This document shows positions 1,278 to 57,193 of a stretch of 64,000 nt of DNA, one piece after another (within the stretch, counting starts at the first letter, position 1; every line of letters starts with the position of its first letter). Both the position numbers and the translations under genes were made by a program. Source of the DNA: Octopus sinensis (lineage: Eukaryota); assembly GCF_006345805.1 (NCBI RefSeq), contig NW_021832230.1, positions 124,001-188,000 on the forward strand, given 5' to 3'. Under the pieces are notes generated by a model that worked only from the letters and a program-made list of their open reading frames with translations, was not told where the DNA came from and did no database searches.

Positions 1278-4200
1278 ACTAATAATTTATTAGAAAAAAT
1301 AATTTGATTAATAGAAAATTTTTAATATTATCAGGATATAGTAAGCAGATTAACCATCTACATCATTGGTCAATGTAAATCCTAAAGTTTTTATAATATA
1401 GTTGTAACATAGACAAAAATAAATTATTTAGGCGCATTTTTGTATTACAGCGAATATATATGACGTTAAAAACAAATAAGGTTATAATAATAAACAAGGA
1501 AAATTGACTTACTTCCAAGAACTCATTTTTTAAGATTAAAGTATATAATAATACACGATAGTTGAGCTTATTAGTGAATGGAATACACGCTAAATTTACG
1601 GTATATTTTACGTAGAAACTTCCTGGTTTGTCGGTAAAAACAGAAAATACAAATTTAGCATAATAGTCCTTAAATGTAAATCGAGACTAACAAACGAAGT
1701 ACTTGTACAGTAAGTGATATCAAATTATTTACAAGATTAAAATATCACGAAAGTATGCAAGACAAAATTAATAATACATCAATGAATTAGTAAAATTTAT
1801 AAAATTAGCACTCAAAAGTCGATAAATGATGATAATTGAAATTTTGATTTACCCTAAACTAGATAATTTAAATGATTATTTTTTCACGAATGGCTTATAT
1901 TTTTTAAAATATTTACACATTTGTCATATACTCGTTTAATTGAGATTCCAAGATTGGATTAAGCTGCGGTTAAATTAAACATTTTATGAATATTTTAGAA
2001 TTTCAATTAGAAATTTTTGTTTAAAAATTTTAATGAAATTTGTCTTGTTTTTTATTCGTCGGAAAGCTAGCTTCAATTACTGAGACTGCATCTAAAAAGA
2101 TCTCGACTCACTCTTCTCAATTTAAAGAATCACAAATTTTATTAGTGAAATAGTCTTCATTTATCAGTTACGAAAATTTAGTTTAGCAACTATCGATACT
2201 ATAGCATAATTATAGTAGTTAAAAATCTTTAACAACACACAGATGGTTCTTTAAGTGTAAGTTTTAAAAATTATTTTTTCGTAATAAATTTAAATGATAA
2301 AAAATATGAACCGTCTAGACAGGCACCTGGAATAAAATATTATTATTGAAATTAAGCTGCCCTTTTGACGTCGAAATAATGTATCAAAACATCAAATAAA
2401 TAATTTAAATTTGTTAATTTAAATTATTAAATTTGTATCGAATTACATTCATACATCTATTTTATTCATTCAAAATTTATACTGTAACTAAAATATAATT
2501 TTTTTATCAAAGAAAGATTATTTAGAAAAGCAAACGATAGTCAGATAAGCTGCATAGTGAATTCATTTTCCAAATAAAAATACGAGTCCTTCCAAAAGAT
2601 ATTTTTTGTTCATACTTAGAGGGAACCTTTTGTTAATCTTCTATGCTTTTACAACTATAATTTTTTATATTACTAACTAAAATTATTATAAATGAAAACT
2701 TTAAATTATCAATAGTCACAATTTTTTTGGCAATTTTATCTGAGGACATAGCTCCACGTAAATTGTGTAAATATTGTGCTAATTATTAAAAACCACAAAA
2801 CTAAAATAAAGCAATTCTAATGTTAAATCGATTTTTACTGGGTTAAGACTAAAAATTATCTTACTTTACCTTAATTTTTAAATGTTGAATTAACACTATA
2901 ATATGAATTCTTTTAGTTTTATGATAGTTGGAGCAAAAAAAACAACAAATTTTGAGGAAACTAGATATATTAGTTTAAAAATTTTTAATCTCAATAAATC
3001 TCGAGGAAACCACAAATTATTTATAACGTCAAAAACTATTAAACATAGCAGCTGTCCTTAAATCGTAGAGTGTTGAAATAGATCCAAAAATATACTAAAT
3101 GAAATAATAAATCTCATTTAATGACTAAAATCTTAATCCACTATAACATTTACTGAATTTTCGCAGCATCGTATTTCAAAAAATACTCAAAAAAATTATA
3201 TATATACTGTATTATTGACTCAGGAATCGCCTATAGTTGATATAAGATGAAATTAGTTATCAAATTTCTACTTTCCGGGTTTTGGTTTTGAGAGCAATTA
3301 CAGGTTTTGGTTTTCCGGGTTTGTATATCTTTAGAATGAAAGATAGTCGAAGAAACAAAAAATTGGAGTGGTATTTTAGCTGTTATTCGCATCTTTCGTT
3401 TTTGTTTGTACAGTAATGTCCTATATCAGTGGTTCCCAACCTTAAGGTGCTCGCGGAACCCTTTTGGGCTAATTTATTTTTGCGGAACCCCTCCAATTCA
3501 ATTATTATAATTTCACTTAAAACATAATAGTAATAACCAAAAACAATTTTAATGTGAACATTGAGGTAATTTTTATCATAGCATATAGTTGTGTAACGTT
3601 AGGAGTTATTGTTGACAACTGTATCCTCATATCAGCGGAAGCATTAAGTTTATTTCTATATTTTGTTTTGGTGGATGTATATATTGAAAACCCAGACTCG
3701 CATAAGTAAGTCTTTGGAAAAGGTAATAGTTTACGTATAACCTTTTCTGAGATATCTGGATATTTTGAAATGTATCCCCTCCAAAAATTAAAAAGGGATT
3801 CATTTTTATATAACTGATATGACTCTGATTCTGATCCAGTTTCTTAGACATTTGTTCGCCATAAATACACTCGATGATTTTTTTTGAACATGGCTTTATA
3901 AGATTTTCGGCAATTGTATGTGCCTCTCCACAACGTGCTACAAGATAACTCACCTGTTTGATTAAAATAATTATATACTTCATAAGATGCTCTGGTCGAT
4001 TTTAAATCGTCGTCTTTCGCAAAATTGGACATTTCCAACTTGCACCTTGTAGATGCATTTAATTTGTTTTGAAAAAAGGAAATATCTTTATCCTTTAAAT
4101 GAAGATGCTTTATCAAGATAGTTTGGCAGGAACAAGAGATGTGTTAGGCATTATATGATGGCATATTACACATTCTGCCGTATGTGGTAAATCAGATCCA

Positions 4201-4560
4201 TTCTGAGAAAACCCATATGAGAGGTAGCTTTCATCATATTTTCTTTTCTAAAATTATAATTATAAGAAAAACCTTTTTTGAATATTTTTTGGAATCTCTT
4301 ATGCAATTATTGTTTCTCATTAAAAATCTTATAAAATTGACCAACTAACTCAAATGAGAAACAAGATATACACCCCTCGACAAAAATTTGGTTATTTAAT
4401 CTTTCCTGCTTTTTTTCATTTAAAAACGAATAAATTCATACTTTAAGATCCTTTAGATCTTCTAAAATAATATTTATTTTGTATTTATAATTAAAATAGA
4501 TTTAAATTTTAATATTGCAAGAAATTTAAAGCATGTCGGCAATTAGTTAGTGACATAAAA

Positions 4561-55217: not shown

Positions 55218-57193
55218 CAGTGGTTCTCAACCTTTTTTGTCCGCGGACCCCTTGTGAGTAAATGAAAAATTTCGCGGACCCCTTACATATTTATTAAGTT
55301 TTTTGTCAAAAAAATTTTACTTATCTAAAAACAAAATTTATTATTAAATCAATAGAGAAAATTAGTGAGAAGGTTGATATTGTTTTTTCGAGGCAATTTT
55401 GTCAATAAGAGGCTCGGTTGTCGACAAGCAAACCCTGATGTCATCTTCAATATTCAGTCTTGCGCGATGATTATTTTTTATATTGAGAAGTGCTGAGAAG
55501 CCATGTTCGCATAAATATGTTGTCGGGAATATAAGCAACAAATTTAATGCATTTTCGCTTACGGAAGGATAATGCTTACACATTTCGCACCAAAATCTTG
55601 ATAAAGCAAGTTTTTCATACAAATCTTTTGCGTTTGAATTATTGATCATGTCAATAAAAGCCTCTTCGATATTTTCATCGACCAAACGTGGATCAACACT
55701 GAATGGTGTACGAATTAATTTCAAATCAATTTCGTTCAATTCTGGAAAGTATTTATTTACTTCTTGTTGAAGATATGTTAAATGTGCATAAATAAGTTCG
55801 GTTATTTTTTTGATTTCAAATGCATCTATATTTACAGATTGTTCTTCAAAAGATTCAAACATAGTAAAATTATTTAGTTTTACTTTTTCTTTCCACAGTG
55901 TTAACTTCATCAAAAAAGCACTAATAATTAATATGAAACAGTTAACAAACTTAATTTTATCCACAAAATCAATTATTGTTTCATGTCTTCCCTGAAGCGA
56001 TTTGTTGAGTGAATTTATACGAAAGAAGACATCTCTCAAGTAAGCAAGTTTAGATAGCCATGAACTATCTATCCATTAATTTCGAAATAAATTCCGATGA
56101 TTTGGAATTGTTTTCGCGAATAAAATATTCAGATAATTCATTCCTCAAAGGAAAAACTCTGGCAAGAATGTTTCCCCGAGATAGCCATCTCACCTCAGTG
56201 TGGAATAAGAAAGCCTTTCCATCATTTTCAAATTCTTCGCAAATAAGTCTGAAAATGCGCGAATTTAAAGCACTCTTTTTAATATAATTTATGATATGTA
56301 CGACATCATCGAGAACATATCTTAAATCTGAAGGTAATGTTTTTGCAGCAAGTAACGAGCAAATATTATTAATTGAGCACAGTTCGCTACATCGGTGGAT
56401 TCATCAACTTGTATAGCGAAATTTTGATGGCATGAAGTTTTTATTTGTTCTACCACCTGAAATAAATAATATAATATCAATAACCTGACACTTAATATTT
56501 TCTGACATTTCAGAAATTCGTCGATGAACAGTATCATTCGATAATGGTATTTCCGAAATCATATTTTCAGCATGAGTGCCAATAAGAGTACGTACTATGT
56601 ATTTACAACAAGGAAGAATCAGTTTTTCGGCAATATTATGAGGTTTCTTTTCTTTCGCTATACGTAATGAGATCATGTAAGATGCTAATAGCATGGAATT
56701 ATCAGAAGGCAAAGTTTGTATGAAACGAGTCAATACTTGATTTTTCATCATTTTACGCAAAGAAATAAAATAATCCTTATTTTTGTGGATTAGATGGGGA
56801 TGACATGTGCGCAAGTGTCTCACAAGAGTTGTTGGTTTCATGCTATTGTGTGACAGAATTTTCATGCACACAACACATTTTTGGCTTTCAAATCCATCTT
56901 TATCAATACAAATAAACCCATATTTTATATAATCAGGATTATATTTGCGTATCTTAATAACATTCGAGGAATTCATATCAATAGCGTGCATAAAAATTTT
57001 ATTAAAATATATTAATTTATAATATATCTAAAAGAGATATTATTAATTATGATTTAATTATATTATATATTAATTTAAAATTGTTATCATTAAATAGAAA
57101 CATTTAAATAAAGTTTCAGAAAAATCTCGCGGACCCCCTGGAATCTTTCGCGGACCCCTAAGGGGTCCGCGGACCCCAGGTTGAGAACCACTG
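55218..57193 (-). mobile_element. Buster-type hAT transposon, internally deleted, inserted in Helitron copy 2
   Basis: TIRs CAGTGGTTCTCAACC; 8-bp TSD GCATATAT (55210-55217, 57194-57201), present once at the empty site in Helitron copy 1 (9311-9318). Transposase RKYNPDYIKYGF..CVVC, IQVDESTDV, HTEVRWLSRG, FPTTYLCEHGFS with introns at 56457-56484 and 55921-55950. Confidence 0.92.

Follow-up and report, generated by a model that had tools for sequence, protein, structure and literature searches.

Predicted micro-introns of host size in the transposase genes of Buster-type hAT and integrase-like elements in probable dicyemid DNA from the Octopus sinensis assembly

The transposase mRNAs of the P element, Ac and Tol2 need host splicing, and splicing of the P element is a known host control point. 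The introns of these three elements are of ordinary length. Some Ginger1 families contain one to four canonical GT-AG introns within the coding sequence (CDS) (Bao, Kapitonov and Jurka 2010, PMC2836005), and introns whose removal is needed to reconstitute the open reading frame (ORF) have been predicted in the Tc1/mariner elements Sardine, Thon and Anchois, which reside in the Paramecium germline (PMC3464196). Here, we analysed a 64,000-nt stretch of DNA filed under Octopus sinensis (NCBI RefSeq assembly GCF_006345805.1, contig NW_021832230.1, positions 124,001 to 188,000 of the forward strand), which is referred to as the window and numbered from its first letter. Two Buster-type hAT elements (B1 and B2) and two integrase-like elements (G1 and G2) in the window carry GT-AG segments of 25-30 nt within their transposase genes. 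These segments are probably genuine spliceosomal micro-introns of transposase genes, belonging to DNA-transposon families of a micro-intron animal, which is almost certainly a dicyemid (Dicyema) parasite of the octopus. The principle of host-type introns in DNA-transposon genes is already known, and the dicyemid case is a new example of it.

Comparison with the described systems showed both likenesses and differences. Like Ginger1, a group of cut-and-paste elements, G1 and G2 have a stand-alone Gypsy-integrase-like transposase (H2C2 and DDE core) with GT-AG introns, whereas their introns of 26-28 nt are of host micro-intron size, and no termini, terminal inverted repeats (TIRs) or target-site duplication (TSD) could be defined in the truncated copies. 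The Paramecium elements follow the same principle, in that their introns are of the type of the short-intron resident host, but the host is a ciliate, the superfamily is another one and the introns were predicted in passing, whereas inter-copy conservation and the ratio of nonsynonymous to synonymous divergence (dN/dS) are available here. With regard to the P element, Ac and Tol2, neither tissue-specific nor regulated splicing is implied by the present data. Animal Buster hAT elements and the genes derived from them share with B1 and B2 the 8-bp TSD and the short CAGTGGTTC... TIRs, have in common with them a BED-like zinc finger, an RNase-H-like core and a hAT C-terminal region, and are 37-63% identical to them at the protein level over the best local alignment. 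The Buster relatives that were inspected are single uninterrupted ORFs, whereas the families described here have one or two introns of 25-30 nt at family-specific positions. The first-pass annotation of the window had listed six such segments and assigned them to four unrelated transposases. All six were read directly on the coding strand as GT-AG segments of 25-30 nt, and its remark that Ginger elements carry introns agrees with PMC2836005, but the transposases fall into only two superfamilies: B1 and B2 are Buster-type hAT families, and G1 and G2 belong to a single integrase family.

B2 (55218-57193, reverse strand) is a Buster-type hAT element bounded by perfect 15-bp TIRs (CAGTGGTTCTCAACC) and by the 8-bp TSD GCATATAT on both sides (55210-55217 and 57194-57201), with its insertion point between a 95-bp and a 102-bp satellite array. 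The CDS remnant spans 55362-56976 and has two lesions: 250 nt are missing from its interior, with the deletion junction near 56353, and the frame is shifted near 56070 by a 4-nt duplication. Micro-intron 1 of 28 nt (GTTATTGATATTATATTATTTATTTCAG, 56457-56484, reverse strand) breaks the frame, and without it the protein reads ...SENIKCQ/VVEQIKTS..., where the slash marks the junction here and below. Micro-intron 2 of 30 nt (GTTTGTTAACTGTTTCATATTAATTATTAG, 55921-55950, reverse strand) is in frame and stop-free, and its removal gives ...DFVDKIN/AFLMKLTLWKEKV... (junction DKIN/AFLMKLTLW).

A second, near-intact copy of B2, about 90% identical to the window copy, was found in the locus L001 (GCA_006345805.1, VCDQ01000570.1, 384228-406642), part of an 854-kb contig labelled Octopus sinensis. 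After removal of two segments at the positions of the window B2 introns, this copy reads as a gene of 600 codons that contains one TGA. The length of intron 1 differs, with 26 nt in L001 (10193-10218) and 28 nt in the window, so that only splicing gives both copies one frame. Intron 2 lies at 10971-11000 in L001, and four of the five inter-copy differences within it would change an amino acid if it were translated, which is far above the exon rate and fits a non-coding segment. The exons of the two copies differ by a dS of 0.32 and a dN of 0.057, giving a dN/dS of 0.18 (515 codons; P = 3e-20 versus neutrality). Since both copies carry the segments, this selected divergence accrued with the segments in place, and purifying selection in their presence would imply that the segments, or at least the frame-breaking intron 1, are removed from the mRNA. 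The B2 introns are family-level features, kept through long divergence under purifying selection. The conservation across copies that the first-pass annotation had linked to its proposal was thus found for both B2 introns, with a 2-nt change of length tolerated.

The octopus label of the L001 contig made this copy an apparent relative from a long-intron host, and the first-pass annotation had considered introns of the same size in such a relative as fatal to its proposal. The case turned out otherwise, because the tetraspanin gene adjoining the L001 Buster copy needs introns of 29 nt (12114-12142) and 25 nt (12401-12425), which places L001 in the same micro-intron organism as the window. Only after removal of both introns did the tetraspanin gene give a single-stretch match to Pfam Tetraspanin (residues 1-188, E = 2e-22). 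These introns ruled out the reading of the L001 copy as a long-intron-host relative or as a product of host-parasite transfer. L001 is very probably DNA of the renal dicyemid parasite of the octopus that contaminates the octopus assembly. The NCBI model P0002 at this locus, [quoted passage not shown] (L001 10001-12415), is a transposase-tetraspanin chimera; it bypasses the TGA by way of a 137-nt intron that shares the acceptor AG of the micro-intron, and it reads through the 30-nt segment.

L001 also contained a third Buster family, B3 (about 14400-15660), which is internally deleted and about 40% identical to B2. Its intron is a GT-AG segment of 26 nt (15009-15034) with the junction LNLCIQG/NNISS, and the spliced product is gapless against intron-free relatives. 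The site differs from both of the B2 intron sites.

B1 (3427-14632, reverse strand) is a Buster-type hAT shell of 11.2 kb with 15-bp TIRs at 3427-3441 and 14618-14632 (CAGTGGTTCCCAACC) and the 8-bp TSD TCCTATAT on both sides (3419-3426 and 14633-14640). About 10 kb of its interior consists of later insertions, including GC-rich fragments of long interspersed nuclear elements (LINEs), G1 and satellite arrays. In the transposase remnant (3519-4247, reverse strand), the N-terminal zinc finger is joined to the C-terminal hAT region; the catalytic middle is wholly deleted, and a copy-specific frameshift lies near 4112. The B1 micro-intron of 25 nt (GTATATAATTATTTTAATCAAACAG, 3954-3978, reverse strand) is a frame-breaking GT-AG segment, without which the protein reads ...TRASYE/VSYLVARCGEAHTIAE..., and its site is uninterrupted in B2 and in 10 homologues. 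The B1 nest also encloses a Tc1-like helix-turn-helix (HTH) fragment (6213-6584, forward strand) and a second hAT-like zinc-finger fragment (6452-6826, forward strand).

The assignment of B1 and B2 to the Buster type was based on their ends, target sites and homologues. Both elements share the 15-bp TIR CAGTGGTTC[C/T]CAACC, inverted at both ends, and this motif gave 6 matches, against 0.9 expected by chance. Both have the 8-bp TSD of hAT elements, with TA at positions 4-5; the Buster-type target consensus was reportedly given as nnnTAnnn by Arensburger et al. in 2011. Homologues numbered 512 at E <= 1e-5; of the 120 listed, those with a name were annotated as ZBED5-, ZBED8-, FAM200- or SCAND3-like. 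Homologues among the matches listed carry PF14291, PF27073, PF27046 and PF05699, whereas direct Pfam matches of the window copies were weak (Dimer_Tnp_hAT, E = 0.001; zf-BED, E = 0.003). Neither B1 nor B2 has an intact catalytic core, and both window copies are non-autonomous remnants.

G1 (7016-7620, reverse strand) is the remnant of a stand-alone integrase-like transposase with an H2C2 zinc-finger end and an rve core. It is nested within B1, truncated at both ends and frameshifted near 7135. Micro-intron 1 of 27 nt (GTATAAAATAAAAAACTTATATAGCAG, 7460-7486, reverse strand) is in frame and has two stops inside; without it, G1 reads ...CKFSIPLK/VSDSKYHVIAKRPNERFQ..., and the segment corresponds to an exact 9-residue gap in the alignment with P0241, against which spliced G1 is gapless. 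Micro-intron 2 of 28 nt (GTAATGACACAATATTTATCTGTTTCAG, 7067-7094, reverse strand) was missed by the first-pass annotation and found here. Its removal gives ...IYGRPNHPQSQ/GIVKRFNQT..., a near residue-for-residue match to HPQSQGIVERFNQT of P0241, and the best homologue across this junction reads IHGRPNHPQSQGIVERFNQT. P0241, a 261-residue protein of the microsporidian Dictyocoela muelleri, is the closest named relative of G1 (49% identity). It is annotated as a Gag-Pol polyprotein, and this label looks wrong for a short integrase-only protein with H2C2 and rve; the distribution of the G family is wide and patchy.

G2 (45251-45666, forward strand) is an N-terminal remnant of the same integrase family with its own start codon and an H2C2 zinc finger, truncated by a LINE fragment that starts near 45729. 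The G2 micro-intron of 26 nt (GTAGAATTTATCCCAATATAATTTAG, 45482-45507, forward strand) breaks the frame, and without it the protein reads ...KLKFIE/AEHNLNHFGRD..., gapless against 13 homologues. These 13 homologues share the start methionine of G2, about 75 residues before the zinc finger, and no open frame was found upstream of G2, as expected of a stand-alone gene and not of a pol polyprotein with RT, RNase H or protease. In Pfam, G1 matches rve (E = 2e-9) and G2 matches Integrase_H2C2 (E = 2.5e-6); full-length homologues of the G family, 430-478 residues long, have H2C2 and rve and no other domains. G1 and G2 belong to one stand-alone integrase family with Ginger-type architecture and are possible members of Ginger1 or Ginger2. 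The hallmarks of Ginger are TIRs of 40-270 bp, TGTNR termini and a 4-bp TSD, which is CCGG or CCGT in Ginger1 (PMC2836005), and G1 and G2 have no identifiable ends on which these features could be scored. The C-terminal parts, where the Ginger1 GPY/F motif and accessory domain would sit, are also missing from both.

The size of host introns was taken from an axonemal dynein heavy chain gene (DNAH5/8-like; 19702-36000, forward strand), whose protein is 68% identical to named mollusc and annelid matches and 71% identical to the best match overall. An earlier length-agnostic exon-chaining model of this gene over-fitted the boundaries; in the homology-refined model, the GT-AG placement was chosen for best fit to five homologues. 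The 21 introns of the gene are 25-34 nt long with a median of 28 nt, start with GT[A/T], end with [T/A/C]AG and have a mean A+T content of 76%. The transposon introns, at 25-30 nt and 80% A+T with host-like ends, are indeed host-sized, as the first-pass annotation had put it.

According to PMC13644364, animal introns shorter than 30 nt are reported only for dicyemids and myxobolids, which are myxozoans, Dicyema japonicum being the sole non-myxobolid case. The median intron of Dicyema sp. is 27 bp (PMC6543705), and D. japonicum, a ciliated animal that lives in Octopus sinensis, has a LINE-rich genome with 49% repeats (PMC6736024). Both the dynein introns (median 28 nt) and the transposon introns (25-30 nt) fit the dicyemid micro-introns of these three papers, which treat host genes. 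Several repeat families of the window recur at 88-99% identity on VCDQ01000570.1, the contig of L001 in the O. sinensis assembly. Together, these features point strongly to a dicyemid as the source of the window. A myxozoan host was judged unlikely, because dicyemids are ciliated parasites of O. sinensis (PMC6736024) and the window contains an axonemal dynein; in addition, the best named matches of the dynein are spiralian (68%), and repeats are shared with the contig from the O. sinensis assembly. A ciliate with a reassigned code was also rejected, since table 6 lengthens ORFs trivially in A+T-rich DNA and such a code is unneeded, the transposase and dynein frames fitting the standard code after removal of 25-34-nt introns.

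The segments were tested as introns against decay of the copies. Excision restored the frame and collinearity with segment-free homologues at six segments. Five of the six segments that the first-pass annotation had named as restoring the frame did so (3954-3978, 7460-7486, 45482-45507, 56457-56484 and 55921-55950), and the sixth, 7255-7283, did not. The predicted spliced junctions are AAGTGTCAG/GTGGTAGAA, GATAAAATTAA/TGCTTTTTTG, TCTTATGAA/GTGAGTTAT, CAATCACAA/GGTATCGTG, CCACTTAAA/GTTTCAGAT and TTTATTGAA/GCGGAACAT. In an alignment of spliced B1 and B2 with 10 Buster proteins of diverse animals, no gaps fell at the junctions, and none of the 10 proteins has an insertion at the three Buster sites. 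When all GT-AG pairs 20-40 nt apart were ranked near the B1 intron, the two B2 introns and G1 intron 1, the segment of the first-pass annotation scored best at all four sites. Where repair by a small indel opens the frame, excision of the segment outscored it (193 vs 167 and 118 vs 95). In the negative controls, which were three copy-specific frameshifts, GT-AG excision failed or scored below simple indel repair. Fixing the boundaries by the alignment score of unconstrained deletions was tried and rejected, as it gives the length with a positional slack of several nucleotides and, in the case of B2 intron 1, leaves even the length ambiguous. Owing to this slack, we relied on the GT-AG-restricted ranking, the negative controls and the counts of equivalent placements.

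Several points weigh against the segments being introns. The window copies are all pseudogenes that bear unrelated indels as well, and conservation across copies applies to the B2 family only, B1, G1 and G2 being single copies here. Several equal-length deletions nearly tie in alignment score, so the boundaries are not nucleotide-exact. B2 intron 2, being in frame and stop-free, is possibly a translated insertion of 10 residues. The candidate 29-nt GT-AG intron of G1 at 7255-7283 (reverse strand), considered probable in the first-pass annotation, creates a stop and breaks the frame when excised alone; together with an assumed 1-nt deletion near 7296, its excision yields the family-like motif VKKSAINICEAFKEI (compare SKSANEVCNAFKNI of P0256). 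Around 7255-7311, no in-frame GT-AG intron of host size was found, and only options of 21 and 57 nt keep the frame. The actual splicing of the segments is inferred from DNA sequence. An exact look-up of a window ORF, meant to locate the window or transcripts in public assemblies, gave no match. Taken as chance artefacts, the segments would reflect random indels in decaying A+T-rich pseudogenes, where a nearby GT...AG pair only seems to repair the frame. From one to 11 GT-AG pairs 20-40 nt apart do lie within +/-60 nt of each tested site, the copies bear frameshifts unrelated to introns, one of six candidates failed, and the frame at the B1 frameshift can be opened as well by a spurious GT-AG excision of 26 nt. 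This spurious excision, however, loses to simple indel repair (100 vs 123), the reverse of the order at the real sites. With the insertion boundaries taken as given and equivalent placements allowed for, GT..AG would be expected by chance with a probability of 0.2-1.8% per site, and the dinucleotides are present at seven sites. Moreover, every segment lies within the narrow host range of 25-34 nt, and both B2 segments are common to a copy separated by the synonymous divergence given above, with its exons under purifying selection. We consider an origin of the pattern by chance to be very improbable.

The segments might also be heritable insertions that were never spliced, carried in inactive lineages and mobilised in trans, with GT-AG ends by coincidence. 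Deletion derivatives of hAT elements are commonly mobilised in trans, all four window copies (4/4) are non-autonomous or dead, and B2 intron 2 could simply be translated. Against this, the 600-codon gene of L001 is open only without its 26-nt segment, the divergence after insertion took place under strong purifying selection that is not expected with a permanently broken frame, and GT-AG ends would have to coincide at seven independent sites; we give this explanation very little credence. A further question is whether the micro-introns, if real, are old, having come from intron-bearing ancestors in other hosts and shrunk with the host introns to 25-30 nt. Some Ginger1 genes elsewhere have one to four GT-AG introns (PMC2836005), and Ogino et al. 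(2010), as cited in PMC6543705, reportedly described the introns of dicyemid genes as shortened, with their positions conserved; the G-family homologues P0241-P0292 were compared at the protein level. The closest outgroup Buster genes inspected, P0001 (1797 nt) and P0008 (1698 nt, on a 403-kb contig), are nevertheless uninterrupted in genomic contigs, and the three Buster sites are free of insertions in all 10 Buster homologues. In addition, B2 lacks an intron at the B1 site and the B3 site is distinct from both B2 sites, for which gains are simpler than losses. Old, shrunken introns are therefore an unlikely source, and for the G family inheritance followed by shrinkage is possible.

The Buster introns most likely arose as independent gains within this lineage, since the outgroup genes are uninterrupted and the intron positions differ between families, with none shared where B1, B2 and B3 can be compared. 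The first-pass annotation had likewise proposed that the elements adapted to or acquired introns in this lineage. A common, introner-like source was searched for, and neither the window nor L001 or L002 contained a meaningful second copy of any intron. Compared with host introns, the transposon introns have 5' ends that are more similar to the beginning of the downstream exon (Mann-Whitney P = 0.0015, 7 vs 21), and their boundaries show greater microhomology to the adjacent exons (P = 0.0015 and 0.02). Similarity of the whole intron to the flanking exons, as would be left by a tandem duplication, was no greater than for host introns. The microhomology at the 5' ends gives a weak hint of recent intron origin. 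Direct repeats of 6-7 nt across both splice junctions (CAG/GT, AAG/GTAA) were observed in several transposon introns, for example at 56484/56457 and at L001 15009/15034, and the downstream exon starts with GT in four cases.

In the mechanism that we propose, the introns would have been gained after the transposon families had settled in this lineage, and the host spliceosome would remove them from the transposase pre-mRNA. The stop-containing intron of 27 nt and the four introns that break the frame (25, 26, 28 and 28 nt) would all have to be removed, and transposase production would thereby depend on micro-intron splicing. The window copies themselves are fossils that preserve the introns; deletion, frameshift, truncation or nesting keeps them from making transposase. 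Both a control point for the host and a barrier to horizontal transfer are plausible, as they would follow logically from dependence on splicing.

Other repeats were observed in the window. A composite repeat is present in three copies, at 7909-9856, at 53992-55075 with 57273-57780, and at 59912-61170 (inverted), and also in L001 (2614-4980). It is made up of a 94-96-bp satellite array, a 102-bp array and a 118-120-bp repeat, the last seen in the first and third copies. The second copy is interrupted by B2 between its 95-bp and 102-bp arrays, and it adjoins a Helitron-like helicase fragment (53303-53665, reverse strand); the satellite arrays may be cargo of a Helitron-type element. LINE or reverse-transcriptase fragments lie at about 4400-5900, 10500-13100, 39600-41200 and 45700-47700, and their G+C content of 42-50% exceeds the background of about 30%. 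They contain long ORFs, in which no micro-introns were noticed, although no dedicated test was made. A Tc1/mariner copy (17569-18715, forward strand) has two partly redundant HTH regions and a DDE_3 core, and no micro-introns were recognisable in it. Among the transposons looked at, introns were seen only in hAT and integrase-type DNA elements. At 58466-59656 there is a T-rich low-complexity tract of 1.2 kb with a period of about 8 (TTTTTTTA) and a strong strand skew (AT skew of -0.42).

A library search for "Dicyema" with "transposon" returned nothing relevant to dicyemid transposons; the stem "transpos" is absent from the main text of PMC6736024 and PMC6543705, and it occurs once in PMC13644364, in connection with myxozoan genomes. 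The structure of transposon genes is apparently examined here for the first time in one of the two animal groups with introns shorter than 30 nt. With uninterrupted outgroup genes and family-specific positions, these introns are a clean candidate set for recent gain at the minimum animal length, and cases of intron gain have seldom been observed in animals. Gene prediction that does not allow for very short introns leads to wrong annotation of these elements and of the genes beside them, as in the chimeric "ZBED5-like" P0002. A barrier to horizontal transfer or a host control point, if shown, would add to the interest of these elements. More tentatively, the transposon genes may be a live record of micro-intron births, since five families have six or seven introns or more, each of 25-30 nt and at differing positions, while the inspected Buster outgroup genes are uninterrupted; we consider this reading somewhat doubtful. 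If it is true, a spliceosome with minimal signal requirements would make almost any A+T-rich GT...AG insertion of about 25-30 nt an intron by default, and insertions otherwise lethal to the gene would be rescued. In hosts with long introns of the ordinary kind, among them the octopus in which the parasite lives, the resulting transposases would be of no use.

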